Shown here: one piece after another, positions 17,293-48,428 of the stretch | How positions within the stretch are numbered: the stretch's first letter is position 1 | How the letters are laid out: each line of letters begins with the position of its first letter | Origin: Lepidodermella squamata | Lineage: Eukaryota > Animalia > Gastrotricha | Assembly (NCBI GenBank): GCA_047495785.1 | Contig: JBLDXI010000038.1 | Span: 496,001 to 560,000 of the forward strand | Length of the DNA stretch: 64,000 bases | Direction of reading: 5' to 3' | The notes under the pieces: model-generated | Seen by the model: the letters and a program-made list of their open reading frames with translations, nothing else | Told to the model about the DNA's origin: nothing | The model's database searches: none | Position numbers and translations under genes: made by a program

Positions 17293-19573
17293 GATATGTG
17301 CAGTTAATTAAGCGATTCCAGCAGATTTTAGCTTGGGCTATTCAATCTTAAGTCAAAGGCCAACTCACTCATTGCTCATCCTTCTCAGCTTAACAACCGA
17401 TAACCGATGGCAGAGAAAAGTCACTAACTAAATTTAGATGGTTTCGGGAGAGGAGAAATCGTCGTTAGTGATTCCATAATCCATAATTGTGATATTTAAC
17501 GATAAACAAAGAAAGTGTTCCTACCACTAGTGAGTATGCGCCTAATTAATCAGCGGCTAACAGTCATACGCATTATACGGTAAACAAGAATGCCTGAGAA
17601 GATCTGCCTCGAAGTGATTGCGTTAGCCGCCAGCATTGCATTGGGAAGTTCATATCAGAAGGCAGAACCAAGAACCTAAGTTCAAGGCAGTCTCGTATTC
17701 AAGGCAAAGCCTAGTAGTGAAATATTCATGGGCCGAAATACAATTCCATGGGATAGATTCATGTCTCAAAAGATAGTTTCATTTTTTCAGCTACTTGAGG
17801 ACCGAAACTGATGCGAACAGTGCGAAACTGCTGTTTACTAATCCTCCTAACAATCCTATTAGCGCTCAACAACTATTAAAAGGGCACGGGATTCTATTTG
17901 TGCTGGTTTTAGGTTGAAAACAGCCAAGTAAAAAAGCGAGAGGGTTTATTCATACAAAAAAATACAAGGGTGCTGACTCGAATAATAATTGATCTCATAG
18001 ACTTAGAATATCCTATTTACGGTAATAAAATAGTTACTATGAGGCACTGATGACAAAAAAATGGCACTATGGCGTAAGGCGGAACATGAAGAAAGTTTAC
18101 ATGCTGACTCTGATATCATATAAAAACAAGATACCGGATGGGTTTTTGTAAACCTTCAAGAACAAGAAACAAGAATATATTTACATCCACTCGGTAACCA
18201 ATGATAGCAAATGCCAACATTAAAATCTCAAATCAAAACACATGCTTCATGCTTTACATGGCGGAGGGCGTAGCACTGCGAGGCAATCCAGGTAATTGTA
18301 AAGATAGCGGCTATGCGTGTAGTATCAGAACAGGAGCAAAGTGCCTAAACCTAAATAATGAACAGAAGCCAGCGTAAAGAACTGGCAGCAGCAAAGCAGA
18401 GGTAGCAAAACAGAGATCGATAAGCGGACGTGTCCATTCGAATGATGAAACCGAAGAACGCTGAGTAATCCTTTCATTCGGTTTGTGTTCGAATATGTAA
18501 AATATAAACGTGAAGGTCATGAAAGCCTTTTCCAGGTCCCAAATCTAGCAGACGATTATTTAGAAAACTCGGTTAATAAAAATATTATTATATTTTATAT
18601 TTTAAAATTTCTAATTTCCAAGAACAATTCGAAAATCGAGAATGAAAATCGCATCGATCCAACCACTTTATTGTTGTTGGTGTTTGTGTGCGGTTAGTTT
18701 TTGGTTCAATAGTGGGCAAGTGTCGTCACCGGTCACCGGGATAGCAAGCCAAAACTGTGGCAAAAACCTCTGCTTAGCACTGAAAACAGCTTTCAATTTA
18801 TTCTTATTGCTGCACGGCTTGCACGGGAAAAAGTTGAGTTAACTCAGAATTGGGAATTACCACATACCATTGGTAATTTACGATTTCTCCTCGCCCGGAC
18901 AGACTCAAGCTGTCGCCATAAGGCGGAGGTAGTGAGAAAATCCCAATGAAGGTTCCTAAGGGCCGAACAATTTTCGTAAAAAAAGATGGATTGGTCTGGC
19001 TAATAGGTTGTCATTCGGATAGCAGGATGGCATCTGACGGCTGCGTTATTATTAGGAACTCGTGCATTGGCGCACTTAATTTTTCACAATTACAACTAAG
19101 CCAAGCTTTGCGCATTCTTGTGTTTTATTTTTATCCGCGAGATCTCTAGGAAACCTTGTCGAGGTCGACCTGTCATATAAACCAACAACGCGAATAACAA
19201 AGTAATCAGGTTTCTTCTATCTTCTACGTTCATACCCTTTCGAGAAGGCAGCTAAACAGAAATTGGTCGCCAATCTCCGCTTTGAACAGTTGGCTTTTAC
19301 TGACGTTTAATTTCTTGTTCGCTTTAGTTAATACTTACGTTTGTAAAATACCTTTTGCGGTAATCGGTAACAGCAGCATGAACAATAGTTACGGTAACAT
19401 TATTTTGACAGTTTGCCCACATTATTAGTTACTCTGTCGTTATCTTAGGTGATCGACCATACGGAAAACGCCCCGACGACAGAATCTCTATGCACAACAA
19501 GAAGTGAGAGCCATTTTACGTTTAGCATCGTGTTGATTATATCTGTTATCGCAGTACCGGCAATCATTCTGCG

Positions 19574-20267
19574 ATGTCATCTTCGAACTACGGGCATGTT
19601 CCTACAGGTGCTCAGTTCTCTGGGCCATCTTCACTGCCTGGTGCCGGTGGGCGTTCACACAGCTGTTCATCGCCTGGAAGCAGCACTGGCAGCATTTGCA
19701 GTACTGGAACTGGTAGTATGATCGTAGCTGGCTCTAACGAAGGTTATGGCATGTATTCGGAAAGTGATTACGCCCATGGGCAGCCGCCTCCGCTCATTAA
19801 TCCCCGAAATAATCATCACAGATATTCTAACCAGGGAGCGACAATGTCACCTGTTACTCCTTATTCGCCCAATTCCCACGCGTCGAATCAATCGCTGATG
19901 TCATCCCCCTTGCCATTCGGTTCGGCTCCCTCAGCTCAAACATCATCGCCGTCAGGTAAGCATTTAGTCGAACACCGCACAGCGTGAAACTGGTTTTTTA
20001 AATAACACAGGCTCAGTATCTAGTAGCACGGACATAACTATGGCATGCTCTCCCTCAGTTGTATCCCAAGATCCAGCTTACAGAACAGTTTTATCTTTCG
20101 TCAATCAAAGGTGGAAGGATTTCCAAGCAAAGCAAGCTAGAGCGTTATCTTCTAACAATCAGTCTTGTTTCGACGAGTTCTCTCCTGGCCTTCAGTCAAC
20201 CGGCGTTTCGTCCACTTCAATTTCCAGATGTACTGCTCCACCGCAAGCAGCAATGCCTGTCCCTTAA
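19574..20267 (+). CDS. Ser/Pro-rich protein with a short C-terminal helix; weak resemblance to the MCRIP/FAM195 family (2 exons)
   Basis: ORFs 19574..19987 and 20040..20267 are joined in frame by a GTAAGC...ACAG intron (about 19956-20010). The helix PAYRTVLSFVNQRWKDF recalls the MCRIP helix, but the family call is tentative. Confidence 0.6.
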
Positions 20268-21743
20268 AATTTCGGACATGCCGATGATAGCACCAGTTTG
20301 TTGCATCACATTGGCGAACTGATTCATCAAATTTATCTAGGTTGCTATTGCTGTTCTGTTTTCTTTCTGCGCTGGAAAATGTTACGGTCGATATCAATAA
20401 TTTGTTGAAATGGCGTGAATAAGAAAATTAGTTGCCTGCCGTCGCAATATTCGTAGTTTCTGTGAGCGTTGTACTTTTGAAAAAGTGTTGTTGATTGCGG
20501 GTTCAATGGAACTTATGTTCAACTGTTGTACTTGAATATTTATTTGTCAAGTGGAGCGTCGTGAAGAATCTAATGATTCCAATCGTCACTTGTTATCTGC
20601 TTTAATAGCATAGCAGTACCCGCTTTATTCGGCTGGAAACTGCATTTTCCGTGTTGTTTTCATTTCTGTTGGGCCTATCGGCTCAAAGTGAAGAGTAATT
20701 TTTCGTATGACAATTTGTATAGCATGGGAAAATGTGTTAATAAAACTTGGCATGTTAGACGCAACGAATGTTTTTCTCATTTATTGACGAATAAGCTAAG
20801 TTTCAAGTCTTTGAGATTCGGCGCGGCAGATCGACCATCTTGAAGTAATTCTACGCCATCACAAGATAGAGTCGTCCAATTTCCAAGGTTTGATCTTTGA
20901 CCATACGATACAGTAGTAATCAAATTGAAGAGAATGCGTAGTTAATCGGCCGAAGGAAAAATACGCGAATATTTATTACACTCTCGATTTGGAAGGTTAC
21001 GTTCAATCAGGCATTTCAAGAAATAAAAATGGATATAAAATTAGGAAGAACTAAAATATTTACATCGGATGCAACACCGCGAAAATTCTTTTGATTGAGA
21101 GATAGAAAAATAAATTCTTTAAGCATTAATAGAGCGCTATCACATAAACAAGGCACAATGTTTTTGGATTTCAAGAGACTATTTTTGAGAATGTGAAGAA
21201 AATAACTAATAGTGCGATCATAATTGGGAGAAAACAGAAGCCGTGGCTGTAAAACGGCATGAATAACACCGGCTAAGAACAACTCGTGCTCTATCTCTAC
21301 TGAAAACCAATTACGTGACGTGAGTGTAGCTAGAACGAAAGTCGTAACGCGTTCGTTGGCGTTAATGTGAAATTTGAGTGGTGCTATTTAAAAATGGGCA
21401 ATATATTTGGCAACGAAGATATTTTGCTAGGTATGTGATAATAGTGTAATGAGCCAATTGATTATTTTATAACAAAAAAATTGAGAAAACAAAAATAATT
21501 AATTCAGTGATTCATCAAAAAATAATTTCCAATATGTTTTTATGACTGATATAACAAGTCGTTCTTTACCGCCAAGCAGATATCTCGGAGCTTCAATGTT
21601 TCTAGAAATATTCGCATAATGTAAAAATCAATTTTGATAATAATATTAGGTATATTATGGTTTTTGCATAATAGTTATAAAAATAGGGACATGTTGTTTG
21701 TGCGTGGATGAATTGAACAGTCTCGTTAAACAATATTTATATT

Positions 21744-24700
21744 CTAAGGATATTCTTCCTCATCTTGTACCATTGGAGCAGTCTCTTCAGCGGTTGTTAC
21801 ATTTGGCGATTGATGCAGGGTTTCTGAGCGGGGACCATTAGCCGAAACATCGTTGCTAAACTCGACCGGGCTCGGTGGCCGGCCGTCGCCAACCAATGCT
21901 GACGACTGAACGGTTCCCATTGACAACGGGGCATCCGACACCTGCACAGCTATTCTACCGTTGATTTCATTAGGCGTGCCTCCAGCAGATTCCACAATCA
22001 TATCCTGGTTGGAATTCTAGCACGGGATGGATGATGAAAAATAGCTAGGAAACGAGAAAGTAACTACCTCAATGGATGCTAAGCGATCATCTACGTGCAT
22101 AGATTCGCCATTTTGTTGATTAATTTGCTGCAACACCTGCTGCTGATGCTGCTGATTTTGAGTGCTAGAGGCAGAAACAGGTCGTCTGCGTGAGCCGCTG
22201 CCACCAGCACTTGGTGTTCGAGCACTCCCAGGCCTCGCCGTAGTGACAACACTACCAGGGTCTCTTTGGGCTGCCTGTCGCAAAATGCCACCGTTGCTAT
22301 CGATTGAGGCCTGCATACTATTCAACCCCATGCCCGGGCCACGCTGAGCATTAGGACCATACGCTCTCATAGTCGCTGGCGAGACACCCTGCATAGGCCG
22401 AGCATTCTGAAAAAAATTAAGTCAAGCAACTTGGGAAAACACATAACAGGGAAAACTAACGACTGCTGGAAGACGCTCTGAGTACCTAGCGCGGTACATG
22501 CGACCGTCCGCGCCTTGAATATCGCGTTCATCTTGAGCTAGATCGTACAGCAGAATATCTTCAGGAACGACTGCACTCAGATGGGTGATACGCGTAACCC
22601 GATGGTGGGGGTAGGTCATCGTATGAGAGCCCCCTACTGGACGCTGAGCCAGGTATTGCCCTTCGACTGTGGTCGCAGCTTGAGGCGCTATTCCTTCAAT
22701 TTCTGCTGGTGAGATGCCGGTACGGCTGGTTTGTGGTGGAGGAACAGAAGGTAAGTTTGACGTTCTGAACTCATCAATTGCGTTAGCCAAATTTCAAAAC
22801 CGCACGATAATGACGGCATGCAAAAACAAAAACAAACAAAACAAACCAAAAGGTGCAGATAAGACAAGCAAAACCAGGCATAGGGAGATGAGGCTCAAAC
22901 AACTGATTCAAATATTAGCCATCATGATGAAAAAGCTTATGACTCATGCTTAAATATTCATATAAGATTTGAGCCTCATGAATAAAATATGAACCAAATA
23001 ATTCGGCGGTCGGATGTCAAGTCTAAATCCGGGGATCCCAAAGCAAGCTATTGCCATGCATGCAACATGCTTAAAACTCAACTAAAGGAGTGAAGCGCAT
23101 TCGAGGTACCAAATGCATGCTAACACCGGCATATAATGAATGGGGTATTGAAATATCACCTGTTCCAGCTGGGAGCAACAGTTGTCCGTGAGCGGCTAAG
23201 GTTGTACTCAGTATTCATGCTGAACACACAATTAGTTGGTTAGTATTTTCGGGAAAGTGTTATCGATTACTCGTCGAGGGAAATAGTATTTCCTAGCTTA
23301 AATATCAACCTGCGTTCGACGAACCCTTGACAGCCAAATGAAGGCGCGTGATCGCCTACTGAGGCTGGTCTAGGGTCCCTAATGGCACCTTTTCGGAGTT
23401 GCCCGTGACCGCTGGTGAGCTCAGCGAGAATTTTCGGGTAGGACCCGACAAATCGCTTTAAATCTGACGGTTCCATGTGTTCGATAGTATTATGGGCAAC
23501 TGCGCGTTGGCAAGCTAGCCAAGCGCGATAGTTTCCCCCGTGTTGACTGATATTGAAATTTGTCAAAAAAGTCAAAGTGCATTGAAACATTGGCGTGAGA
23601 AATTAAAAGCAAAGCAAGCGGGTTAATGCCGTCCCCGTAATTTATAATATGTTCCAGTCAATAATTATCGAATTTCAAGAATTTGATTTCAAAGGAATTG
23701 GGACCGCTTCAAACCTTTTTGTCGCTTGGCGAATCTGCTCTAGTTCGTAGGTCGTAAATGGCCGTGGAGTTCGAGTCGCTGGAATGCCAGACCCTGGTCC
23801 AGGGATTGAAGGAGGTGGACTAAACGGCCGCAACTCGATTGGTCGATCGCAGCTAAGGCAATGAGACCGAACAACTTTGAAAGCTGCAGCTTCATCTGGA
23901 TTATTATCGGTGGCAATATGCTGAAAAAATTATTAACGCTAAAAGGTTGGCAGGATGGATCGAAAGCGACGAACCTGAGCACCCAATTTGCCGAGTTTTG
24001 AACTAATTGCTTTGAGTTTTGCCTCCAAATAATCACGAAGCGTTTCTAGGTCACTACGATCAGCCTTCCGCGCAAATTCGCTGTTAAATTTCATTACCAA
24101 TAAAACCTTACTAAAACGAGTTTTTCTCAAGAGTTACCCATCCAGCCGCAAACGCGCTCGTTTAGCTTCTTCTTCGAGCAACTCACAACGCTGCTGCATT
24201 TCCTCGATTAGCCGGTTCAAATCCCGTATCAATTGTTGGATTCTGTGGAGAAATGATATACCTTTGAAAGAAATCGCACGGTAAGTCTTACTCGGCGGCG
24301 TTTGCCTTCCGATCAAGCTCAGGCCTATCAGCCTTTCGCATGAGTTCTTCGCAAACCCACAATCGGTCAGCCTTGTCTTCTTGTAACCGCGCCGTATCAG
24401 CCGTGAGAGTCGAAATACTCGCCGTGTGACCTGCAACGTCTGTAACCAGACTGGTGGAAATGCGCCGTAGTCGCTCCACCTCATCGCGAGCATCATCCAG
24501 CGAATCTCGAAGCTGTCGGATCAAGTCAGCATCCTGTAAATCGCAACGTAATTAATCAACTTCATGAGTAAAAAATAATATGAACTGACGCGTTCACGGA
24601 GCGAAGTGAGATTTTCGAGTTGCTGGCGGAGCGCATCAATGCTAGACAACAGCGAGTCAGATAAGTGCATATTGGCAAGATCGGACCGGTCAGCCTTTCG

Positions 24701-26697
24701 AAGGAGTTCCTCTTGTATATCGGCAATTTTCTTGTCTGTTTCGTTAGCCCGTTCCGTTAACTTGGCGATCGCTTGAGAGTATTCGTCCAGTTTCGAAAGT
24801 GTCAGGGCGCTCAATTGGTCTCTTTCATTGTCGCGATCGAGAAGTGCTTTCATGTCGGCTTCTAGCTTTGCAATCTGGTCGGTGAACTGCTGCATGCGTT
24901 GCTGAACGTTCTGCCAAGCTTGTTGGCTCTGTTGGCGAACCGCGTTCAATTCGTCCTGTGTTGCGTACTTACCAGTTGTCTTTTCCAAGTTCCGCTGGAA
25001 TTCATTAAGGAAAAGTTAATACATACTCCAATCGATGAAACAGAGAGTATACTTGGAAAGCTCGCTATTTATGAAGCGTTAATGTTGCTTTGACTAATTT
25101 ACATGTGTGAATTAGAGCGTCAGAAGATTATAAAAGCAAAGCCCCATTCAGTCAATCGTTTTGTGAGTACAAATTCTTCAAAGCATTCATATACCAATCT
25201 TTCCTCGATTCTCGCCAACTGATCTGGTGTTGGCATGTTTGCAGCCTAAGATCGTTTATGGAAAGTAAACAAAATAAGCCAGAATTCGAACATCGAAGAT
25301 TCAACGCAAGAGCTAATATGATTCCGAACAATTATGATAGAATATTACGATATACCCAAGTTAGAAATAATAAATTAAATAGCTGGAACATAACTACTCA
25401 GCTAGTGCGAAAAGCCTCAAGATATACCTTCCCATCATTTTGCTTATCACGAGATTTCTAAATATTGGTGCAGAAATCGGAAATTAGGATTCAAGAATTT
25501 CATTTAGACAGACAATGGTTAAACACATGGGACCTGACGATTTGTAACAAGACAACATTTAAACGTTTAACTTTACCGCGAATGGATCTTCCAGCATTAT
25601 TGTTTCAACCGAATTGCTCAATGGCAAATTCGACTTTGGTGCCAAATTAGCCTATTAATTAATTGATAAACATGCGTTATTACCGGTGGAAAGTCGAGTC
25701 CCTTCGAAATTGCATTCAAATTAAACGTGATTAAAGCCCTATACTGCCTTTCGTGTGAACGCTTTTGAAACAAAAACTTTTTTTCGCATTCCAGTTACCG
25801 AGGGTGGGGCCAGTTGGAAAGAAGGTCGAGTTTCTTGTGCAACATTCCCACAAGAAGTGGCACCAATAGGAACAGGTAAAACTGCTCCGCTACCATCGAG
25901 TAGCGCCGAATCAGTAACGGTGAAAGTGGGGACAACAGTAATATTTCTAGCGGGCATGTTATCTGCCCCGGGGGGTATAGAAGGCTTGCATACCTCTGAG
26001 TTGAGGGACAACGTCTTTTGCTACCAGACAGGTTTAAAAATTGATCATTCAAAATAACTCGTTGAATTAGTAAGTATTTTTTCGAGTTTGACTTACAAAA
26101 TCGGCAACTTGCGCCATAAGCCTATCTTTTTCGTCCTCGAGGCGCGCGATCTTATCCATCAGTGACTCGACTAGCTCCGTGATCTAACGAAGCAAAATAT
26201 TATCTCATCGAACATCGAAGTCGACAGGATCAACGCACCTTAGACATGCCAGTTTCGTTGGCGTCACACCGTTTTTGAAGCTGGATGAATTTCCACATGT
26301 CAGATACGGGTTGGGATCCTGTTCCCCCTCCTCCTCCACCTGACTGATCGCCACCCAATTTGCTGCGTTTGGCAGCCAGCAATTCATCGGCACCAGGGTA
26401 GTTGGTTTCAAACTGGTTTAACTTGGTTTCCACGGTCTCCATTCGCTTAAGAAGATTTGAGTAATTCGGAGGCAGAACGCCAGTGGATTGGCCAGTGGCA
26501 CCAGCAGTTCCAGAGCCTCCAGATATCTTTTGTAACTCTTTTTCGTCAGCAACCACTACTATCTTTTCTCCGCCGAAATTAAGCCGCTTCACCAATTCGT
26601 GCAGAAACTGTTGCAAAACGTTGAAGTTGACAGCTCCGACCTCCGGCGACGCCAGCGCCAGGTCGATCATGCTATCCAGGGTGACTTCACTCTTCAT
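21744..26697 (-). CDS. QRICH2: QRICH2/C16orf96-like coiled-coil protein (DUF4795 type), multi-exon
   Basis: N-terminal LDSMIDLALASPEVGAVNFNVL, repeated (R)KADR motifs, DEAAAF...HCLSCDRP, RPFTTYELEQIRQ, GGSHTMTYP and DIQGADGRMYRAR. These motifs show that the ORF fragments from 21744 to 26697 belong to one gene. Confidence 0.85.
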
Positions 26698-26781
26698 TTC
26701 TTAACAGACCTATAAGTATGAACAGGTACATATTTTTGGTGCATTTAATACACAATTTGAAAATCTTCGTTTAAAAACTTG

Positions 26782-28907
26782 TCATAAGAAAATCCGCGAG
26801 GTAAAATAGAAACAGCACGAATAAATAACAGCGAAAAATGATCCATCCGAGGGAAGTTGCGGTGCACTTGACAGAGGAGCATTCATGAAAAAAGGGTAGA
26901 AGAAATCCCATTCCAGGCGATACTCGTCATATCGTGTTTTCTTGATTGTCGATGGAAGCTGCGATGAAATTTTTCATTAGTTTTAGAAGCAAATTGAATG
27001 AACGTCATTATCACCTTCGTATGGTCTTCGAATCTAACATGAAAGTTGACGGATATAGACGGGTCAGGACAAGGCACCATTCCCAGACATGGAAAATCGT
27101 AATTCTTTGGTTCACCGAAGTCGTAAGCAACACCAACGATTTGATAAATCGGATTTCTCATCGACTGCTTGTTAGCATACAAAATACGAAGGGTAACGCT
27201 GGTTCGCAAACTATTTGAAACATGAAATGAAAATATGTAACTAGTTGTTTACGTGATAGCATACTTTTGACAAGTTCCTGGGCGGCTGCTATTTGGTGCG
27301 CGGATTGAACCGTATTTCACGGTATCGTTGAGGATAGGCACCCAGTCACTAGCTGAATTCGGATCAGAATCACCAAGCATCGCCACGTGAGTAGGGCGAG
27401 CTTTAGGATCGCCGTAGGCTAGATCATAAATTTGCTGCTGAATCTGTTCGCAAGATCCCTTTAAGGGTAGTGTGCAGAATGTCAGAAACTCGGCGCCGAA
27501 TCGAACATCTCTCCGTTTTGACATCGAGCATTTACCGTCATCAGTGATCTCCGGTAGAGTTAAACCGGAATTAAGAGCTGTGACTTTTTGAGAAATTATC
27601 ACGCTTGTTGATATCGGTTTTCCTTTTTCATAATTGGCAGCGCCGCCCAAATAATTTGCAGCGCTTTGGCGTTTGAAAGAAACACTGAAAGACTGAGGAA
27701 AGTTTTTGTATTCACCAATCGGTACATTCCTCAAAGTTATAACTGCTTTGACAGATGTTATAGCGCCATCGTCAAAGAAAATTGTATATGAAACGTCACT
27801 GACAGCATTGCTGCAAACGCTACCAGCGAGTTTTGCTTTCGAACAAGCTACACCACTTCCCGATGAGCTCAAGCACTCAGCGGTGATGGGAATGGCAATT
27901 CGTCCGTTAAGTGCCTTCTGAACCACGTCATCGCCGATGATTTTACGAACGTCCGAGAGGTCACTTATCATTGTAGTAGTCAAGAATATATCGACTGGTA
28001 AAGTGTAATTGATTCGGAATGTGGATGATTTGAATAGAGACGGATATCGAACAACATTAAGGCCAAAATGGTATAACTCTGAAGATATTTGCGGTGCGCT
28101 GCAGAAATCTGAGCCATCGGCATAACTCCGCCAGCAAGTCAACCTTGAATTCACCATGAAGGTAACTGGTGCGTTGTCGCTACAAGATCCACTGCTAGAG
28201 CTGGGAATAGTGAAAAAGCCTAAAGAGCAAAGCTCCTGATCGTCGGTAGCCTGTTTCGAAGATCTGCAGACAAAAAGACGATCGCCAAAGGTATAGCGAC
28301 CCAGAACTGGTATAAGGCCCTCCGTATCGCTTATAACGATATCTTTTTTAAACTGGGCGATTAGCTGGTTAAAGTATTGGTAATCGTTGGACGTTTCCAG
28401 TTTCTTTGCATAGTTTCTGTTTGGCGAATCATCGTAGTCAATGCAAAACAACGTCGCCGTTATGTTTTTGAAATCAACAAATGAGGATGTGCGGTAAAAA
28501 GCCAAAGAATTGGCATCAATACAACGCCGGCTTATTGCGATATCCTCAGTGTCAAAACAATCATCGAAAGCTTGCAAGTCTTCCGCGGAACAATCGGGAT
28601 CGCAGCAGCAACCTACATCGCAGCTCAATTTGTCCCTATTGCAAAAGCATTGCCTGGTTTCGACCCGTTTGCTAGATGGCGTCGTTTGGCGTGGTGATGG
28701 GGCGGGGGTGATTGCTGATATTGCTCTGGGCGTTACACCTTGCCCCAGATTGGAACCGATTACTGATGGCTGTTGGTTTTGACCCGGTTGCGCAACAGGT
28801 TGGACGGTTTGTGGTTGTCCCAAAACCGGCTGGTTGTTGCCAGGAATATTTTGCTGAGCAAATGCAATCCAGAAACCTCCAATCAAAATTATAAATGTTC
28901 GTGTCAT
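26782..28907 (-). CDS. TCTN: Tectonic family protein (paralog B), 3 exons
   Basis: Signal peptide MTRTFIILIGGFWIAFA, Cys cluster CFCNRDKLSCDVGCCCDPDC, NYEKGKPI, VRFG, W(V)PI, and a last exon ending WDFFYPFFMN plus a hydrophobic tail. Confidence 0.9.
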
Positions 28908-28988
28908 AACCCCTAAAATCAGCAAAAGATTAGCAACTCTGATGAAAAATTTCCTCAAAAAGATGTGCTGGATTACAATTACTGTCTT

Positions 28989-31019
28989 TTAGAAAGACCA
29001 AAAAGCAATACATGAAGTAACAATGAGTAGCATTCTTGTTGACAGATAAACACTGCTGTAAGCAGAGTTCATAAAAAATGGATAGAAAAAGTCAACGGGC
29101 AGGAAGTTCTCGATTTGCCTGGTCGGAGCAATGACTGGCGTTGGCGGCTGAAAAATATAGGTTTCGGTAGACATAACAAGTGAGTTCAGATTTGTTAAAG
29201 CTTACCAATGAGTAGTCTTCAAAAACTACAGCAAATTTTACGATTACAAAAGGTTTCGAAGAGCAGAAAGCGTCGGAGCATGATACAGAGTATTGCCTAG
29301 GTGGATCAAACTCGTATATTGCGTCGATTATTTGAGCTTGAGGATTACTAGCAGAACCAGCATTAACAAAGCTAATTCTCAATGTGACCCCTGTTTGCAG
29401 ACTTTAATAATTATATTAAATATAACTGATCTTTTGAAAATAAAAAAGCTTCACTTTTCACAAAACCCAGTCTTGGGATCGCCAGTTACGGATATGTCAG
29501 TGAAATTCGACCGCAATGGAATCCACTCAGCAGGAAGGGAAACGTTTGAGTTGCCGTATATTCCGATTCGATCATGCTGTAGTGTTGTCCCCATCAACAC
29601 ATTTTTGATCGCCAGTTGGGTAAGGGAGCACGTCTTTTCGAAAGAGATCATGCAGCTACTAGAAACACTAATTCCAAACCGCACCGGCATTCTTCGAGCC
29701 AAGGAGCAATCGCTTCCTGGAGCATTATCAACACTGAGACTTGTAAGCCACTCGCCATTAGAGACCGGTAAATTGATACGATAATTTGGTTTAGATGTAC
29801 GCGTTGCCAGAACAGAATCTTCAGTGAGGCGCATTTCAAGCTTGCCGGCTAAAATCGGTTTGCCAATAGTGTAGCCAGGTCGGCCACTCGATTCTGATAT
29901 GTCTGAATTGATATCGCTGAAGTGAGTAAAGGTCACTGAGAATGTTTGTCGATAAGTTGGCGAGTCAGAGCGTGAAAAGTTGCGCAGAAATACTTCAGCC
30001 CTGACTTCACGGATGCCATCTAGATTCGAACCATTGTAAGAGTATGCAATAACCCATGAAACGCCGGCAACTAGATTTACGCATTTGTCATCTGAATAGT
30101 ATGCTGTGCTCTGGTCTGAAAACAAGGCGGGGCATGGTACAATAGCGCTGGTCGTTGAACTTCTGCAAAGCGTTCTCACTGGGACTGTACTGTTCTCTAC
30201 ATAAGAAGCGGAACGACGAAAATCAGCAGTCATGTAATCAGATAGTTTCGCAGCATAACTAGCATCTCTTACAATACGATACCCCGCGTTGTATGTAGTA
30301 TCGATCAACCACGACGGTATTTGCTTCGATTTGCAGGCGCTGATGAATAATTCGACGTTTTCAATATCGTGCCAGCAACTGAATTGCTCGTTTATGAGAA
30401 ATGTGAGAGGTCGTGGGCCAGAGCAAAGCCCACTCGCGGCGGCATTAGGAATGTTAAAATAGCCTAACACGCATTTTTCATTGGCATTTGCTGGATCGGA
30501 CCGACAGACGTAAACAGGATTACCGCGATGATAATTTTCAAGATCAGAATGTCCAGAATTATCCATCAATTTGACAAGAGACGGGTCATCTTGATTGTTT
30601 ACGAAATTGAATCTTGTTTGTTGGTCAACATTAGTGAGCGCATCGGGAAGAGGAGAATCGGATTTTTTCGGATAATTGTCATAATCAATACAGAGAACGT
30701 CAGTAACGGACAGCTCCAGTTCCAAAATGGGAATATGGTATAATGGAACAAACGGCTGCACCTCGTTGCATTTGCGGTTTTTTCTGATCTCGCGCTCCTC
30801 AGAGCAAAATTCAAAAGATGCAACATCTTGCACAGTGCAGTCATCGTCGCAACAGCAGTTAAGTTCGCAAACTGTGGTATCTTTGTCACACAGGCAATTA
30901 GAGGCATCACGTCGAAAATACTTAGCGCTCGTTTCGTTTCCAATTGGCGTGACGTCACCTACTGCGCAATTATTAAATAATGTTATCAGAACAAGCACGT
31001 AATATAAACTATACAGCAT
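28989..31019 (-). CDS. TCTN: Tectonic family protein (paralog A), 3 exons
   Basis: Signal peptide MLYSLYYVLVLITLFNNCAVG, CLCDKDTTVCELNCCCDDDC, SGRPGYTIGKPILAG, PVRFG, and LPVDFFYPFFMN plus a hydrophobic tail. The ATG at 31019 follows a TTAG acceptor; 31091 is an alternative start. Confidence 0.92.
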
Positions 31020-31610
31020 TCTAATTAATAAAAAAATTAATAGTTGCATAAGTAAATGTATTCTCAATTCCCGTCGGCTTCTTGTAGGCATGGCAGTATG
31101 TATTTTTAATAAGAGACATGTAACAGTTTCAATTTCAAATTTAATGGTAAAAAGTAAAAAGCTATTTTTGGTAGGAAGAATTCATTGATGACATAGACTA
31201 AACACATATCACATCGGATGCCGACTAGCTTCCTGTGCTCATGTTTATCTCTCAATTCTGCGTTAGTTTGTCCCAGTTTGAGATTCTCTCTAAAGAAAAT
31301 AATGTAACCCTGTTGAATCTGAGCAATGGGCAGCGATCGCTCTGCATAAGCGTGTCGCGTAGTGCGCGTAGGCCATGGCAGCTCAAAGGATACTCAAAGG
31401 TTGTTAAAGACGAGCCTCCTCAGAGAGACAGCTCGCGTATGATCCACAGCGTGTGTTACAAAAGTGCAATAAGCAATAAGGGCTGCAAAAAATCAGGAAA
31501 TGAAATAACGCTAACATTGGGGAAAAAAAACTGATTATCTACCATATACCGCGACTACTCAACTCAGATTCTACTGGCTTTCATGGGGAAACATTTCTGA
31601 CGCCATTGTT

Positions 31611-31625
31611 GTTGCCAAGGACAAC
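31611..31625. promoter_or_regulatory. Candidate RFX X-box upstream of the tectonic cluster
   Basis: GTTGCCAAGGACAAC resembles the palindromic X-box GTTGCCATGGCAAC. A second half-perfect site, GCTACTCATGGCAAC, lies at 31900-31914. Confidence 0.45.
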
Positions 31626-32741
31626 ATCAACTTACGAAAAACGCGCATTTTTACATCTTCACAGTTTTAAATTATTTAACTTAAAAAAAGTAAAATTTCA
31701 ATGTTGAAAAAATTGATCTGTCTAATTTATAAAAAAATGATATTAATACGCTTTAAAATAGAGGGCACCAATGAAGCTCGGTTCAAAAATCAAACCGAAA
31801 ATCTTGAAGTCGATGTGATACAACTCTGAAAAATCCGAAAACTGAAAATATGTTATGTAGACCGATGTGGAGTTTTTGGAAATCTTTGCTCGCAAGTGGG
31901 CTACTCATGGCAACAACACCAACAACCAACAGCAAACGCCTTTCTTTATTGACCGAGTCAAAAAACAATTTCTAAAGCAATTGTGAACTAGTTTAAACTG
32001 GCTGAAACTGAGGAGTTTGAAGGCCGACCCTGTCCTGATTTTTAGCACTAACGGTACCAAATCCCTTCGCATGCAGTCCCTGTAGCCTGTACCCGCTGCT
32101 GATGGCTGATGACGCCGACTGTTTTACTGGCTCCGATTATATGTTTCGAGCGCAAGGAATCGACAGCAACTTCGACTTATCCTGTCATCATTTCTTATAA
32201 CCGCTGTATTCCGGTTAGCTTCGACAGAGAACATCACGTGGACTTCTCTCAGCAGGAGAAGCAGTCCAGGGTCCATGCCTTCGCCTTGCTTTTAAACATT
32301 GTTATGTTTTGCTGACGACAGCGAGGCCAGTTCTTGTGGCTTCATCACTTTTTCCGGTGGCATGTCTTTTAGTCTTTTCCGAGTATTTCGACGCGTTTAC
32401 AAGTGTCGCTGCTGCTTGATCTCCTCCTTATTGTGCTTATTGTCACCCCAGGCCGGTTTACTCTTCATTCAAGATTCAAGATCATAAAATAGCGATGATG
32501 ATGGCTTTACCAAGCTCAGGGTTTCGCCGCTTTTTATCTAATCATCGTCATCATCATCATCATCTCATCCTCATTACTTGATTTCTCGTATTGCATCAAA
32601 ATATAGTCATTAAAAAGAAAACAGAATATATAGTATATAGCAATATTTGGATCGAGCGCGAAGGTAGGCGTCCGGTCGTAATCTCGGAGAGGAGTTTGAC
32701 TTCTTCTGTTAGCAAGATTATCGGTTCGCCCATGTAGAAAT

Positions 32742-32870
32742 GAGAGCGAAGTACGTTATAAGCGAGGTCAATTGACTTCACTGTACTCCCTTCGAGCCTG
32801 CCATTTTGGTTCGTTATAGCAAATGTTCCTTATAAGTATACCCCATTCGTTATAACGATTCTGCACTGTA
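32742..32870. mobile_element. Remnant end(s) of a pogo/Tigger-like MITE
   Basis: Repeated (TT)CGTTATA(A) subterminal motifs and two CACTGTA ends (about 32785 and 32870), which read TA-CAGTG on the minus strand. No matching second terminus was identified. Confidence 0.4.
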
Positions 32871-33647
32871 GATCATGGTGGATACAAGCTGTAATTTCAC
32901 CTACCTACTGTTTATTTGGATATCGGATCACGAATAGGAAGTGAAGAATACAGCTTATAAGTATAACGCTATATTACAGTGGGTCCGTTACTGTAAGTCT
33001 CTACAAAGGCAATTATTTTTAATTGAAGAAGTATTATTAAGTGGTTATTAGTAATTTTGTGGCCAGAATGTTTATTCCTTAACAATAATGAAAATGAGCT
33101 TTAGTAAATAGACATATTCTGCCTGGGTGGGACATCAGTTTCCGCCTTACCTGTTGCAGGGACCGCGTCGCCAACGGCAGCGCAAAAAAGTTACGTGTAA
33201 GTACATGGTCTTGGTGTACATGGTTAACACATTATGTCCGAGTAGCTTACAGCAGAGCTGTGCTGTTATGTGAGTTCCTTTTTCTTCCGTACCATTCTCT
33301 CAAGGGAACCTTTCGACGAGCAGATTAACATTCCGACGCGTTCCAAAGGCGCAAAGTTAGCTCGGTTCAGGATCCTCGAATTGCTCTCTTCATTGAAACT
33401 CATGTAGCATACGACGGTTGCAGAAGTCCTGATTTGACCTGTGTTTTTTGTGGAAGCGCCGTAATTTTCTCATTTTTCCTTCATGGAGGTCTTACGCAAA
33501 GTCACAGCCTGAGTTGAGGAGAATTAGGTAGCCAAAAACAGCGGTGCAACTCTGCTTCGGTCTTATTAACATCAATATGCTCGTGTGTAATTTTTTAAAA
33601 TTTTTTTGTTTTTTTATAGTGTTATATTCTGTCTAAATATTGACAAC

Positions 33648-36465
<2,818 letters not shown>

Positions 36466-39842: not shown

Positions 39843-42800
39843 TTAGAAAACATTCGCCGACGCACCGCTTGTTGACTGGATCTTCACCACCGAGCCATCC
39901 GGCCCACCCATCGTATCGTAACCGTTGTCAGCTTCGATGCCTTGATTCGTAGCTTCACCCGTAGCACCGCCGGCGGTGCGGTTTTCAAAGGAAACGGTGC
40001 GGGATAGTCGAACATGCCGCATCTGATCGTGGTGTCGCCTGCGGTACTTGACGAAGAAAAAGCCAGCCGCAGCAATGCCGAGTAGCACGAGAACCAGCAA
40101 AGTAACGCCGAATCCGATCGCGACCGACCTCATCGAGTTGTAGCGCTGCTGCCATGCTAGTGTATCGCTGTTGAGAGCCGTGGCATAGCGCGAGTCCGCC
40201 CCCGATGAGCCCGTCAGCAACATAGGCGAAGAACCAATCACCATCGGTTTGTTTTTGAAGGTTATGGACGCCAGAACGACAATGTAATAATCGGTCGACG
40301 TGTTCAACGGAATGGTAAGTTGACGCGAGTTGCCGTCCATCTTAATTCGATAAAATCGAGTGAACGCGGCCGAGTTGCCACTGGCTGCGCGTCGGTAGCA
40401 AACCTCGAAATAATCATTCGGAGAGTCGCCCAGGTCATTTGACGCGGCGACAGGCACGCGAACGGACCACATGACCGCGGCAAATGCATTCGAGCTTCGG
40501 GTGACTGAAATAGTCACAAGTGGAAGCGGTTCGTCGCTAGTTGGATTACGAGTAGCCACGTCAACTGCAGCCGATCCCTTTTCAGGGTCCGAAAAGTTGT
40601 AAACATTCATTGAAGTGACAGTGATGCGGTAGGTTACATCGGGTAACAGCCCTGTTCGCTGATAGTTAAGGCGTGGAATCTGAGTGATATGAGCTGACGT
40701 CGACCAGAACAAGTTCGAATCCCCTGAAGAAACCTCAGTGAAGTCCGTAAACGGCGAGCGAGGATCCAATGTTGATTCGTAAGTGACCTTGAAGCGAGAC
40801 AAATAGTCAGATTTCGCTGGCGGGATCCAGGAAGCATTAGCCGTGTAGGGACCCATGAAGACTTTGAGGTCGCGTGGAGCGCTAGGCAGACTGTCAGCAA
40901 GGGCACACTTTGCCATTGCTTCGAGACATCTCGCCTGTAAAATGTAGGAGCGCGATGCAACCGGGGACTGGTGTGGGCACCTGCAGCCGTCTAGATTGCG
41001 CAGCGCCGCCTCGCAGCAATCGGGATCAAGCATTTCAGACAGCGCCGCAATATTGACCGATGTCATCGGCGAGTCGGTCTGCCCAGATGGACCTGGCCTG
41101 GTTGGTATGATTAGCGGGTATTTGGTGGCAGCGACCGTAGGCACGGTTGGGCGTATAAAGTCGACTGCAACTTCGCACGTGGCGCTCCCGAAAATGTTAG
41201 ATGCGTTGCATGTGAACGACGTAGATTCCATCATAGAGGCTAAGACCTGGATTATCGAGATTGAAGTGTTGCCTGAGAACGTTGTACGCGGGTACGAACG
41301 GAATGGCGTTGCACCTTGGTACCATCGGAATGACACTGGATAGCCGGTAAAAGAGCAGTTTATTGGCACAGTTGCATAGTATCGCGTAGGTAACGTCAGC
41401 TTTCGGAATGGCAGAGTAGCAGACGGTTCGGACAGTACTTTGACGAAACGTGTGGATTCGTAGTAGGTCTTCGTAAAATTACTCTGAACTCGACAAGTGT
41501 ACTGCCCAGACATATTGGCCAGTATCGGGTTGATCGTTAAATTCGTCGCTCTTGGGGTTGGCGTGGCCAACTGAACACGAGCGGGAGAAAGCAATTGACC
41601 CACTGTTGACGACGGTGATGCCGAGCGAATGCTGAATGTTTCGCTCATCGGGCCAGGCGGCGAATACCACCAAGTCACGTTACCGAACGCGAACTGAGGC
41701 GAGCAAATCATGGACAACGATTTGCCGTTCGGGGTATATTCACCAGGTGACAACAACATAGTGACGTACATCGATTCTCGCGAGGTCGAAAAAGTTACTT
41801 CAGACGAAGGCAAACTGATCGCGCTTCTATTCGATATCGCGACAACCCATGCGCGATACATGGTCGACGGGCGCAAGTCACCAACTGTCACAGTCATCAT
41901 GCCAGGGTCGATAATGGTCACAATGTCGTTTTCATCATCACTATCGTCGTCTATAGTCGGGTAGCTGGATGGAATCGCCGCGCTGATGTTGGTCAACGTT
42001 CGAACGTCTGTGGCGTTTGGCTCCGGGTAATAAAACAGCGTGTAAGACGAAAGGCTTTCGGCATTTCTGCTCGGCGGCAGCCACCTCAAAATTGCGGAGA
42101 TCGCCGCGGTGGAAACAACGGAAAGTCGGCGTGGACTTGACGGAATCGAATTGAAGCGGCGTTGATAGCAAGATATGATCATAGGCATAACAGATATGCA
42201 ACTTCTCGGTACCGTGGGTCTTTGCGTCGCAGACGTTGTGCATAGGTGTAGGCACTCGCTTGGAACCCCGGTGTTCACGCAGCAATCCCTGTTGCCCTGG
42301 TTTGCCGCGGGAGATTTGTCAGCCGTAGACCAGCAAGCGAGTAGTTGTGGCACATCGTCTGGGCAATGCGTCAAGCTGAGCGCTCGAACGTCGGTACATG
42401 CTCCGGAGCACGAGTCAGTCAATCTGATGCTACTACAACACGTCGAGATATTTGCCATCCATTGCGAGAACGGAATCTTTTGGAATTCGACAACGGACGA
42501 ATTGCTCGAATCATCTGGCGCAGTTATGAACGAAATTTCGTTCGACGCAAGACTTTTACCGGCGCTATTGACTGCAAAAACGCGGAAAGTGTAACGCGAT
42601 CGAGGGTTCAATCCGTGAATGAGACGTTCGTAAACTGGGACTTTGGGTGCCACGGCAATTGAGTATTCGGTTTCAACCTGGTCATCGAGTCCAGTCCAGG
42701 CTGATATCAGGAATGTTGAAAAGGCTGGAGAGTCGGCGGTCGGTGGACGCCAGGACACCACGACCGAATGAGCTGTAATGTTGTAAACATCGAGAGAACG

Positions 42801-45204
42801 AGGTGGTTTCGGAATAGTAGCCCAGCCTTCACGAATGCATTGCATGATGGTTTGGCTAAATGAAACACAGACGGCTTGATCTCGACCGATATCACGGTAG
42901 TTGGGCGACACGGCACACACCCGCAGACATTGGTTTGGAATGCCTTGACGAGAGCAGCACAACGAGTGATTTCTGCCATCAGCAGCACACGCAAGCACTT
43001 TGTGAAAATCAGCGTTTAAACACGAATAAAATAGCACAGGATCGGCTGCGGCCATGGCGGATGTGTTGGAGAAAACATCAGCGTTGCAAAACTTCATGCA
43101 CTCAGACTTGACGCCAAGCATCGCGCAACACGAAGGCAGATCAGGCTGGGCGCCCGACGAGTTGGTCACTTCAGCGACAGGCAACGTCGAGAAATCAATG
43201 ACCGAAGTCAACCCTGGTCCACTGGCGCTTTCAGCCCAGACAGTAGCAACGTAAGGCTGGTCCGGATCTAGGCCACTCACAACCATTCGAGTATTCGTAG
43301 TCGGAATAGCTTGCCATTGCATAGCATCCTCCTCGAGCGAAGACGGCGCAAGCGAGTGGGGCTTGATCAGCAGTTTGTACCTGAGGACTATCTTTGCATT
43401 GTCAGTTGGGGGAGACCAGTCGAACGTCGCCGAAGTCGTCGTAACATTTGCTACAGTAAAATTCGCTGGAACTCCGGGAAACAACTGCTTCCCCTCGAGA
43501 AAGCAAGCATTCATTAAGCCGACATAACGCAAGCAAGACGCATGCTCAATGCCGAATGTTGGCGCATTCGGGGAGCAAAAAGCTTGGCAGTTGGTCGGGA
43601 TACGACGCATTTTACAACAATTTGCGTGATCGAATTGGCCAGATAAGCACTTAAAAATCGGCTGCAAAGCATCGGAACACGTGAATGCTACGTTGCCGTC
43701 CGTAATATTGCGCAGCTGTTCCGGTGTGTGTCGCGCAGTACAAAATAATTCCATGCAGTCGGCAGGCACCCGGGACCTCGCGCAACAGCTACCAATAGAT
43801 CGGTCGTCAGTTTCCTATTTATAATGAAAAACTTCGTAAATTATCACCAATTCGGTCAAAAAATAACTACCGTTGGTTTAAAATTCGGCGGAGTAAAAAT
43901 GTCTGATATGAACGAAGGAGCGCTAGAACCGTGAGATGATATTGCTGTGACGTAAACAGCGTAGCGAGTGCCAGGCGTCAAACCGGCTAGTTCCATTTTG
44001 GTATCACTGGTCAAGCCAGGAGTTATTTGGAAATCATTGTCATTAAAATTTTCGTCGTCACTGGCGACAGGTGCAACAAAAACGCGGTACTTGATTTGCG
44101 ATTCAGCGTAGAAACCAGTTGTAGACGGAGGAAGCCACCGCACGAGAATCGAAGTCGACGATAACGGTGTCAGTGAAACACTTCTTGGTGGGTCTGGAAT
44201 TGTGTGCTGGCCTTCCTCCATGCACCGCGTAATCGAAGAAATTTGAGGGAAACAACGCAGAGATAATGAAGCCACCCTGCCCAGGCCGAACGATGTTAAA
44301 TTCGCGCCTGCTGGCGGGGTGCAAAAATCGAGGCAATCGGCGTTTACGAACCGACGAATACAACACGGAACGTGGTTTCGCTGGTCCGATGCACAGTACA
44401 CAAAAGTTCCCAGGTGCTGCATGCATTGAACGGAAGCAACGATGTCGTAAGCACTCCATGTCGACTGACCGCTGCAGAGTTTTTGACAAGTAGCCGATAC
44501 GTTCATTCTACGACAGCATTCTAATCAAAAGAAACGAGCCTGCTGAATCACGCAATAAATTAGACGGAATTCTGACCTTGTCTCTCGAACAACATAGTGG
44601 ATGATATACCAACTGATGGCAGAGGGCTAGAAGAGGTGCCGTTGATTGTTAAAACTGCCGTTTGGATCAAACGATTTCCAACGCCGGAAAACACTTGACA
44701 GCTGTACGTGCCAGCGTCAGCCACGGTCGTATTCGAAATTTGAAGGTCGAAATGAGTGGCCCCGCTCTCTGTAAACAAATCGGAGTTTTACATATTCGCT
44801 CATAAAACAAAGATTTGTCAGACCTGATCTTCCTAAAATTTTGTAGCGCTCATCCATCATGAGCAGCGTCTTGTTAACAGATAACACCAGCCCATGGTCA
44901 AGAAACGTCCATATCACGCGTTGGGCCAGATCAGCTTGTTGTAGAACGCACTTGAAAGTTGCCGTTTCGCCAGTTTGAACAGACTAGGCGGAAAAGCTAA
45001 CACTTGAGCGTATTTTATTAATTGCAATTTTACCACAGATTTAGGTCCCTCCATTATTCTAGGAGCCGGGTCATTTTGCTGCAGCCAAGGCAACACCAAT
45101 TCTAGATGGAAAAATCTTGTATGAACCAGAATAAATAAAAATTATTCAATCTTACGTGCTGCTGAAGGTGCCAGGAAAAATAAGAAAAATGTCCGATGGA
45201 ACAT
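39843..45204 (-). CDS. Type I membrane protein with Ig, cysteine-rich DB modules and fibronectin-III repeats (IGDB-like)
   Basis: A signal exon (MFHRTFFLFFLAPSAA) and an Ig domain are followed by alternating DB (CASDQRNHVPCC, CAADGRNHSLCC) and FN3 units, two more Ig-like units and further FN3. A TM helix (VAIGFGVTLLVLVLLGIAAAGFFFV) precedes a short tail. The terminal exon is about 4 kb. Confidence 0.88.
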
Positions 45205-48200
45205 TTTTCCGAGAAAAAAATCAGGCCAGATGATATTCCGATTAAATGCAAATATTCAAAATGACAGACGAGCTCCTATACGAATGTACAACAAAAGGTG
45301 TAATGTCACCAAAACGCTTTGTCGCAACCCCGCCGAAGCGAACACACCTGGTCAAACTCATTTTCTCAGTAAAATATGCCTGGCGCATCTCGGAGTGATA
45401 AATGTGTTACATATGATAAGTTACCGCCACGGTCACCCTTTACACAACGCACAAACAAGCGCCACATGTACGGCAAACAAAATGCCTGCAAAGAAAGGTC
45501 GAACGACCGTTGCACAGAAGTGTACCAATAGCGACGCGCTGCTCTATTCATCGCTCAGTCGCTGTCCCTTCCCTTTATTGGCGCAAGATGCAAGATAATA
45601 AAAGAAACTGCATTCATCTTCAGCAAACCGAGCGCGTAAAGCGCGACGGCAGTTGACTACGAAAACCAACAATAACATAATAATTATGTTCTACTGCAAC
45701 CCATCGCATTAAACAGAAAACAGCAAAGAAGAAAAATAATGCGCGGCGTTATATACGTGCCTACGCTACAAGGTTAAAAACAAAAAGCATATGGGAAGAC
45801 ACGTTACATGATCTTAATGCTGAAATCTGCCAAGTTTTTGGCAAACAAACAACTCTGCGCCAAAAGACTTAAAGATGCCGCATCAAGATACGCGAATACT
45901 AAGAATAACAGACATTATATCAATTAAATCTTGGTGCTTATGTGCGACCTTGCGACACATTTACATCCCGCATTTTTTGTCAACGCCACGGAAGCAAAAC
46001 GACAAAAACAAAACCTCACCATTGAATCTTTGTTCCACCATATCTGAGCAAAGCTGTCAGGATGTAGTAGTAAAAACATATAGGAACAGTAGGCATTCAG
46101 GTTTCGATGTTTCGTCGTAACCTATGCATCGAATAAATATCTTTGAATCGACCCTAAGGCTAACTTGAACATAAACCAACATTTTGTAGACGCTAGATCA
46201 TGGTGACAGTAGTCAATAATATGCTCTAATAATACGGTAATATTTTGGTATGAACTAACGACTATGCGCCGCGTATCTCAGGTAATAAACGATCTGAATA
46301 TCTAAACTCTAGCGCAGCAATCGTCATAATATGTTATCAACATATTAACCATTTATTAAACGGCTCGTGGTATGTACGCAAAAATTTGTGGTCGAGAATA
46401 AAGCTTTCGGTCATTTCTCGTGTGGCTCATCACTTTATTATTTTTATGATAACCAGCTGGAAGCTTAAGAGTAGATATGACTAAATGAGACAGATGATTG
46501 ACGGCCCAATTTAGCTCACTTTTTTCCGAGGCACGATCGTTGCTTACCTGAAGGGTCCCGATCGGATTTTTGACAGAGAAATCAATTCGGGTCTTGGCTG
46601 CAATGATCTCTCGACAAAAATATACCCTGATGCGTATTGTGGACGTTGCAGTAGGTGTTAAGCAGTGTTTTTAAGCAGTTTAACAGTTTAAATTTTAAAC
46701 ACCAAACGAGAAATTTTTAAACACCAAAAAGGGCGAAATTTGGCTGAAATCGCAAGAAAAACAGTCTTCATCCCCAAAATTACACTCCAAAACCGCAATT
46801 TTAAACACCAATTCGATCCTTAAAAAACACGTTGTGTTAAGAGACCGAATTAAGTTCAAGTTGTTAATGTGTTAAGAGAGCAAATACGGGGCCGGCGCTA
46901 TCTGTCATAATTTTTCGACCAACAGTCCTAATTTTCACATTGGGGTCTTGAGTAATTTTCTGACCTGTCGTTATACGCGTAAGACCGATGGACTCGATTT
47001 TAAGCAATTTAAATGAAATAAATGTTATATGTTCCCTTTTTGAAAGGTGACTTTCCTCCCATCGGCCTCACCTGGACAGCAATCCATTTAAATTTCTGTC
47101 TCCCATAATGAGATGACCTTCGAATCTCGAAAAGATGCTACGTAATGCGCTCGGCTAGGCGTTGATCATCAACTATCTTCCGTATTGAATGTGTTTGAGT
47201 GCGCGACTCTACTAGTCGCACCAGTGACATCACATGACAGAGTCGCAGTAGAAACCAACGAGAGAAAAACAAGGTGCAGCAAGCAGTTGTTCAATAGCAA
47301 AGTCATTGCACCAGTAGCACTATCAGAAACTGAGGGCCCGTTTAGAAGGATGAGATACAAACGCCAATAATATGGAAGCCAAGGAGTCTGTTTTAAAGAT
47401 ACCACTGCAGGTCACATTTTGAACTAGGAGACAGAGCGAGCTGAATTGTTTGTTAGCCAGGTTTTCTAAAGAAAAATCAAGATTGCGATGCATTTAATAA
47501 ACGGTCGCAGTAATAACAGTGCCTAATTTCGCCACGATTTACATAAAATCGGCAGCTTCCTCTCTAAATCGAGCGTTATCGCTCAGACTACTGACTTCAT
47601 GTCCCAAATGATGCCACGTAATCTTTCCAATTGTGGTGGAAATTTTCTCGGCCACGGAAGACCGTTCGTCTCCGGCCCACAGACTAAAGAAAACACGGAG
47701 GACCAAAAGGAACACTAACGCCCACTACAGATACGTACCCTGTAATTATGTTCGAGTTGATTCGTTCGGTATCAACAAGGCAGGTGAGAAGGGCACGCAT
47801 CGAATCCAACATATTTCGTGTGAAATTCATTCAATGTCTCAGCGACACTGCCTATTCTCTATTCCTGCCTGCCTGTCGTATTCACCAAGGAAATCAGGCT
47901 CTTCGTAACTCGTAACTTTGATAATGACGGCGGCTTTCCACTCAGTTCAGGGTTTCGCAGAGTCGGCACAGACAAGGTCACGCCAGCCGGCCCTGTTACT
48001 ACCCTGTTACTACCTCTCAGGTGGAAAATGACAATACAGGCGTGGGATCCAGGGCTGTCGCTTAATATAATCGTGGTCGTTATGGATGGCAATATGTTCG
48101 TCCCCCCTGGAAACTTCTTTCACAACTCGTCTGCTCTGCCAGCATCACCAAGATAAAATGTCAAAAAAGCCTAACTAAAATAGCTACTGTTTAGCGGGCA

Positions 48201-48396
48201 AAAGTCATATTTTTCTCACAGGTAATATCATTACAATTTGCGTATGATTATAATTATATTTCAATAAGAGATTAAAAAGAGATCGAAGTAAGTTTTTTGC
48301 TTTTCAGAGAGAACCTGAAGGGTGCCTGAGTCTGAGACAGCGTGTTGTGGGAGTTGACCGTGGCAGAATGCGTTGCCTCCCTTGCTTCTGGTTTCT

Positions 48397-48428
48397 CCTC
48401 GAGCCTCGAGCCTCAAGCCTCAAGCCTT
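48397..48428. repeat. 7-bp tandem repeat (CCTCRAG) x4.5
   Basis: cctcgag cctcgag cctcaag cctcaag cctt. Confidence 0.8.

Follow-up and report, generated by a model that had tools for sequence, protein, structure and literature searches.

Layout of the locus

The stretch of DNA analysed here, referred to as the window, is 64,000 nucleotides (nt) long and corresponds to positions 496001-560000 of contig C38 in the 121-Mb, 151-contig genome assembly of Lepidodermella squamata. On its minus strand lie three closely packed genes, two encoding tectonics (A and B, genes 1 and 2) and the third a long coiled-coil protein of the QRICH2 type (gene 3), and the arrangement of this trio suggests, with moderate confidence, a spliced-leader-type operon in a compact invertebrate genome. 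The sequence-only reading of the window had put the trio forward as a candidate ciliary operon, functionally coherent and under RFX control. The features that make up the locus are the following:

28989 to 31019, minus strand: tectonic A (gene 1), ATG at 31019-31017 and stop at 28991-28989, sequence read directly.
31019-29455, 29401-29206 and 29147-28989 (stop included), minus strand: exons of tectonic A.
29454-29402 (53 nt) and 29205-29148 (58 nt), minus strand: introns of tectonic A, both skipped in RNA contigs.
28908 to 28988, minus strand: first gap, 81 nt, a T-rich tract and then a TAG acceptor at 28915-28913.
26782 to 28907, minus strand: tectonic B (gene 2), ATG at 28907-28905 and stop at 26784-26782.
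28907-27265, about 27210-27015 and 26958-26782, minus strand: exons of tectonic B.
27264-27211 (predicted; RNA contigs end at both borders) and 27014-26959 (56 nt, RNA-confirmed), minus strand: introns of tectonic B.
26698 to 26781, minus strand: second gap, 84 nt, ATTAAA at 26748-26743 and then a TAG acceptor at 26712-26710.
21744 to 26697, minus strand: gene 3, coiled coil with DUF4795 (QRICH2 type), ATG at 26697-26695 and stop at 21746-21744, about 15 exons, first intron 26238-26184.
31020 to 33648, no strand: divergent intergenic region of 2.6 kb between tectonic A (minus) and a PRELI/CRAL-TRIO gene (plus, ATG at 33649).

The three genes are co-oriented, and the gaps that had been read between them, 81 nt (28988-28908) and 84 nt (26781-26698), are exact to the base. 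Such gaps offer too little space for a 3' untranslated region (UTR) with its poly(A) signal followed by the promoter and 5' UTR of another gene. Long non-coding DNA is found at the head of the trio only, where the 2.6-kb divergent region constitutes the only room for a conventional promoter, and at the downstream border the trio meets convergent plus-strand open reading frames (19449-20322).

The tract preceding each ATG of the trio is acceptor-like, being T/A-rich and ending in TAG, and is similar to the ends of the RNA-confirmed introns. The acceptor AGs (31022-21, 28914-13 and 26711-10) lie 1, 5 and 12 nt before the ATGs of genes 1, 2 and 3, as expected from the earlier proposal of an AG within 1-12 nt of each start. 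An AG in this position is by itself weak evidence, since one is found within 12 nt upstream of 52% of all window ATGs, and three out of three would occur by chance with a probability of 0.14. A TAG within the same distance precedes 12.6% of the window ATGs, and its presence at three starts out of three, as is the case here, has a chance probability of about 0.002. The ATTAAA noticed about 30 nt ahead of the last acceptor is indeed there, at a distance of 32 nt, and the first gap contains no poly(A) hexamer (AATAAA or ATTAAA).

The tectonic genes

Tectonics (TCTN1/2/3; tctn-1 in C. elegans) belong to the MKS module of the ciliary transition zone. Domain searches, run exon by exon rather than on joined full-length gene models, returned PF07773 (58.3 bits) and PF25752 (DUF1619_N, 25.2 bits) in the large first exon of A, and the same two domains with 72.4 and 34.2 bits, respectively, in that of B. 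The curated Pfam cut-off for tectonic matches is 22 and both genes are above the cut-offs for both domains, which bears out their initial identification as tectonics. A full HMMER search with tectonic retrieved 1379 relatives, and a six-frame scan of the whole assembly revealed no tectonic gene beyond A and B. When read by eye, the two proteins present hydrophobic, signal-peptide-like N-termini (MLYSLYYVLVLITLF... and MTRTFIILIGGFWIAFA..., respectively) and hydrophobic C-termini. At 31091, 24 codons ahead of the A start, there is another in-frame ATG, from which the protein would gain MPTRSRRELRIHLLMQLLIFLLIR (31091-31020); it is probably unused, with RNA coverage stopping short of it.

A and B share 24% identity with each other and about 24-27% with any named tectonic. 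Their relationship was addressed with two trees, a FastTree of 137 tectonics and an IQ-TREE of 55 tectonics (LG+C20 PMSF), and in both of them A, together with P0127 (its orthologue from a relative, 46-52% identical), is sister to B with a support of 99. An intron position common to A and B, after TGT-GAA/CAA-AA codons, agrees with this placement. The assignment of A as the TCTN1 orthologue and of B as the TCTN3 orthologue, towards which BLAST scores were leaning, is contradicted by both trees. The sister position points instead to an old, lineage-specific tandem duplication, which would predate the split from the relative carrying P0127.

The DUF4795 gene

Three consecutive exons of gene 3 are colinear with the DUF4795 profile, namely 24533-24294 (profile positions 6-82, 38.9 bits for a cut-off of 34.8), 24079-23975 (122-151) and 23920-23717 (157-207). 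Judged by this domain, the label "QRICH2-like" given to the gene at the outset appears right, and it applies at the domain level. A six-frame scan of the whole assembly recovered two of these stretches of gene 3 and no second DUF4795 gene. QRICH2, which carries DUF4795 in its C-terminal part, is needed for mammalian sperm flagella (PMC6347614), and it is by homology that gene 3 may be given a ciliary role. A feature search with the DUF4795 exon, sequence searches of the PDB and an Rfam scan of 20000-34000 yielded nothing useful.

RNA evidence

The RNA evidence comes from the assembled contigs of one small SMART-type complementary DNA (cDNA) run of 2015, designated X1 and labelled "RNA?". The one other run in which this DNA occurs, X2, has the stretch near-identically within one long contig and may be the source of the DNA itself. 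That X1 is cDNA follows from the fact that its contigs skip the GT..AG introns 29454-29402, 29205-29148 and 27014-26959. A fourth intron is skipped by a 3,504-nt contig that starts at 26674 and runs downstream, continuing from 26239 into the exon at 26183. All three genes of the trio are therefore represented in X1 and are expressed. Word depth in the contigs is 36-45 for gene 3, roughly twice that of genes 1 and 2 (17-25), such depths being unable to rank genes.

Coverage of gene 1 ends at or before 31049, so that the 5' end of its mRNA lies within about 30 nt of the acceptor and the ATG at 31091 would be excluded. No X1 contig maps over 31438-32000, and beyond about 31049 there are only faint fold-back contigs at 31214-31364. 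The latter, with a depth of 2.5-4.75 and "opposite strands" fold-back joints, are situated 200-350 nt upstream of the A acceptor and represent cDNA artefacts or, alternatively, what is left of an outron or precursor.

A 20-nt loose end at 26771 (26771-26773) was considered as a possible 3' end of tectonic B and rejected. It corresponds to the SMART polymerase chain reaction primer, whose orientation is incompatible with any genuine cDNA end, and the contig is a chimera whose end falls 9-11 nt past the stop codon.

Acceptor layouts and leader-RNA-like genes elsewhere in the genome

The acceptor-at-ATG layout of the trio is also found after the DDX46 gene of the window (53049-53200), where two AATAAA hexamers are followed by TTTCATTTAG immediately ahead of the ATG of the next plus-strand gene. 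TAG acceptors stand as well before the ATGs of the PRELI/CRAL-TRIO gene, of the B9 gene and of TMEM231, which are first or solitary genes; a TAG acceptor therefore speaks at most for leader use and is no proof of co-transcription.

In the ribosomal DNA (rDNA) spacer that goes from 28S to the oppositely oriented 5S (G000:C2:2908301-2911419), two paralogous modules on the minus strand (1875-1780 and 2325-2215) resemble genes for spliced-leader RNAs. In both, a short exon ends, at a GT donor, in ...TTCGAATTCTAAG before GTATGA or in ...AAATTTTCTGAG before GTTAGT, and downstream of the exon come an Sm-like AAUUUGA or UAUUUUAG, a terminal hairpin with perfect pairing and a run of T. The unit recurs at intervals of about 8.46 kb, and 5S gave 47 scored matches. 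The bdelloid rotifer leader, in the version used as the query, was absent from the genome when up to 3 mismatches were allowed.

X-box motifs and a probable RFX regulon

Control of the trio by RFX factors had been proposed on the basis of X-box-like sites at 31611 and 31900. These two sites, and the two with which they can best be compared, are:

31611 to 31625, minus strand: X-box-like site GTTGTC-CTT-GGCAAC, 11/12 half-site positions, 3-nt spacer, 590 nt upstream of the ATG.
31900 to 31914, minus strand: half X-box GTTGCC-AT-GAGTAG, good left half only, a single mismatch to the nematode-type consensus, 880 nt upstream of the ATG.
L027:3679-3692 (G000:C10, about 2523869): B9 X-box, of the form GTCTCC-NN-ARNAAC on the gene strand.
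L034:1398-1411 (G000:C74, about 1292897): TMEM231 X-box, of the form GTCTCC-NN-ARNAAC on the gene strand.

Both trio sites exist as loose matches, and their best alignment has a 3-nt spacer. They are distal, and matches of this quality occur at background frequency: 74 kb of control sequence contained 31 sites with at least 10/12 matches and spacers of 1-3, and the loose fly-type pattern GYTNYY-N1-3-RRNRAC has the same density, 0.58 per kb, in the window and in seven bona fide ciliary promoters. Two loose-pattern sites in 900 nt have a P of about 0.1. One-mismatch nematode-type 14-mers number 1.8 per kb in the window, and no exact consensus 14-nt X-box is present in 26000-34500.

A six-frame scan of the genome found one RFX gene (PF02257, 120.6 bits, G000:C3:4119653-4119880). 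Exact 14-mers lie 115-135 nt before the ATGs of the B9 gene (GTTATTTTGGAGAC) and of TMEM231 (GTTTCTCGGGAGAC), against a background of 0.06 per kb. Their presence at two of the seven promoters is estimated to be an event of about 1%, which indicates that they are probably genuine RFX sites and that an RFX regulon probably exists in L. squamata. The trio sites do not look like members of it. The bona fide ciliary promoters examined either have no such sites or have proximal consensus X-boxes of a different look.

An apparent genome-wide excess of perfect GTTGCCATGGCAAC palindromes was also considered as evidence of a regulon and discarded, given that 15/20 fetched sites belonged to three repeat families. 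These were 20 genomic sites of GTTRCCATGGYAAC (L007-L026), and the 15 repeat-borne ones have shared flanks, as in TTTTAGCCCT-GTTGCCATGGCAAC-GCTTGGAAATC. Mobile or repeated elements thus carry perfect RFX-type palindromes. Among the perfect X-boxes listed, 23/50 have an AT spacer, and no ciliary genes were found beside the five unique perfect sites.

Functional coherence and neighbourhood

The domain-level identities on which the idea of a functionally coherent cilia operon was built hold, and the coherence itself was overstated. Since A and B are tandem paralogues, their adjacency needs no functional explanation; the duplication accounts for two thirds of the "functional coherence", and what is left to explain is that the DUF4795 gene lies next to them. 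A few percent of animal genes are estimated to be cilium-related, and a single ciliary neighbour is for this reason not significant. At seven other ciliary loci of this genome the neighbours are a translation GTPase, a kinase, a YjeF_N protein, a retroelement and unknowns, with no ciliary gene among them, which speaks for no general trend to ciliary clusters.

Conserved gene order was seen elsewhere in the window. A 14-kb metagenomic contig of a relative (L040; ENA ERZ27333047 k141_274370) has the same order and strands as window positions 39843-56811, that is, an fn3/DB/Ig gene (minus) followed by DDX46, an amino-acid transporter and UbiA (plus). With mollusc, brachiopod and nemertean proteins the window DDX46 shares about 60% identity, and with the L040 protein 71%. 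DDX46 is thus nearest to spiralian proteins, and the animal is probably a small member of the spiralians.

Interpretation of the trio

The short gaps, the TAG before all three ATGs and the single long region at the head of the trio are the reasons why an operon is favoured, together with the recurrence of the layout after DDX46 and the leader-RNA-like genes of the rDNA spacer. From this arrangement we infer a single promoter, a polycistronic precursor and leader addition at the trio acceptors. Transcription would start in the 2.6-kb divergent region upstream of A and run through all three genes, and the mRNA 5' end of each gene would be created by trans-splicing of a leader at the TAG acceptor located 1-12 nt before its ATG, in a manner coupled to 3' end formation of the preceding gene. 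RFX control would have no part in this pathway.

Several observations weigh against such an operon. No X1 contig bridges either gap, leaving 28780-29007 and 26675-26770 uncovered, and the contigs, which end at about 28779 and at 26674, reach none of the three acceptors and show no leader-like loose end. The tectonic gene of Patella (mollusc) and that of Lingula (brachiopod) have neither a second tectonic nor a DUF4795 gene within 10 kb, so that the linkage, whose conservation had been suggested as a check, is not seen in either. The only contig of a close relative (L035) is 1.6 kb long and extends from inside exon 1 to intron 2. Beyond these, a metagenome scan gave two distant TARA loci, neither with a second tectonic or DUF4795, word-based searches for linkage recovered only a frog tectonic and P0127 itself, a scan of genome contigs gave nothing, and no ciliary operon was encountered in the literature searched. 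As to the RNA, assembled contigs lose rare precursors and the ends of cDNAs are under-covered, which makes absence from X1 weak evidence. The RNA contigs, which end short of the gaps and acceptors, neither support nor refute the operon.

The same layout could be produced by three separate, tightly packed transcription units, with genes 2 and 3 starting in the gap or in the last exon of the upstream gene, and with the TAG before each ATG being either the leader acceptor of monocistronic transcripts or a coincidence. This is possible and considered rather unlikely. The missing bridging RNA in X1 is in its favour, as is the presence of similar TAG acceptors before the ATGs of the PRELI/CRAL-TRIO, B9 and TMEM231 genes, by which an acceptor alone proves no operon; the twofold word depth of gene 3 would also fit, if such depths could rank genes. 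On the other hand, 81 and 84 nt are hardly enough to fit promoters into the gaps, the first of which has no poly(A) signal, and similarly short distances between genes on one strand are found again in the window, DDX46 and the gene after it being an example. That RFX, acting on the 31611 and 31900 sites, drives the trio as a functionally coherent cilia polycistron is very doubtful. This reading can draw on the RFX gene of the genome, on the 11/12 half-site positions of the 31611 site and its fit to the loose fly pattern, on the regulon suggested by the proximal consensus X-boxes of B9 and TMEM231, and on the fact that the only tectonic and DUF4795 genes of the genome are in the trio. Against it stand the 3-nt spacers of both sites and their positions 590 and 880 nt upstream, a loose pattern equally frequent in window and ciliary promoters, the lack of a nematode-type 14-mer in 26000-34500, and the two convincing X-boxes of the genome, which are 14-mers at 115-135 nt from the ATG. 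In addition, the paralogy of A and B leaves one adjacency to explain, in a genome where the neighbours of seven other ciliary genes are non-ciliary.

Operons resolved by spliced leaders are of a known kind, and the gene content of the spliced-leader-type operon favoured here is unusual and statistically unremarkable. If co-transcribed, the trio would be one more animal operon. It would stand apart from most of them by combining a flagellar gene with transition-zone paralogues, and could serve, on a small scale, as a natural test of operons as a means of enforcing co-dosage of cilium parts. The trio would be a rare functionally coherent animal operon if this lineage had retained both tectonic paralogues and its sole QRICH2-type gene in a single leader-resolved unit whose one promoter, perhaps responsive to RFX via 31611, fixes the dosage of the three together in cells with cilia or flagella; this is improbable. 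A by-product of the analysis is an X-box calibration for this genome, the 14-mers GTCTCC-NN-ARNAAC about 120 nt before the B9 and TMEM231 ATGs, which can serve as a yardstick for later RFX claims.

Comparison with known systems

Like other members of the tectonic family, A and B have the DUF1619_N and tectonic domains and a cysteine-rich N-terminal motif. Their hydrophobic ends, as read by eye, may correspond to a signal peptide and to the hydrophobic C-terminal anchor of TCTN2/3. They differ in being very divergent (about 24-27% identical to named tectonics) and in that each has the other as its closest relative, rather than being orthologues of separate vertebrate paralogues. Gene 3 resembles QRICH2 in forming a long coiled coil with DUF4795 in the C-terminal half, followed by a short Q-rich stretch, whereas it is shorter (mRNA of about 3.5 kb) and has no glutenin-like Gln-rich repeat region.

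With the RFX/DAF-19 regulon of C. elegans, Drosophila and vertebrates, L. squamata shares the presence of an RFX gene and the MKS-module genes B9 and TMEM231 with what appear to be proximal 14-nt X-boxes. The trio, in contrast, has no proximal consensus site, its two candidates being distal, with 3-nt spacers and at chance frequency.

The closest parallels for the trio as a whole are the operons of nematodes (C. elegans, SL2 type) and tunicates (Ciona, Oikopleura), from which it differs in that neither leader nor polycistronic RNA was seen at the locus in the X1 contigs, in belonging to another animal lineage and, as regards nematodes, in having TAG acceptors instead of TTTCAG. For the first gap, in which there is no poly(A) hexamer, the tunicate type is the closer one. 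With both groups the trio shares genes that follow one another on one strand at distances of about 100 nt or less, a donor-less acceptor just before each downstream ATG, one long upstream region at the head and, in one of its gaps, 3' end signals near the next acceptor.

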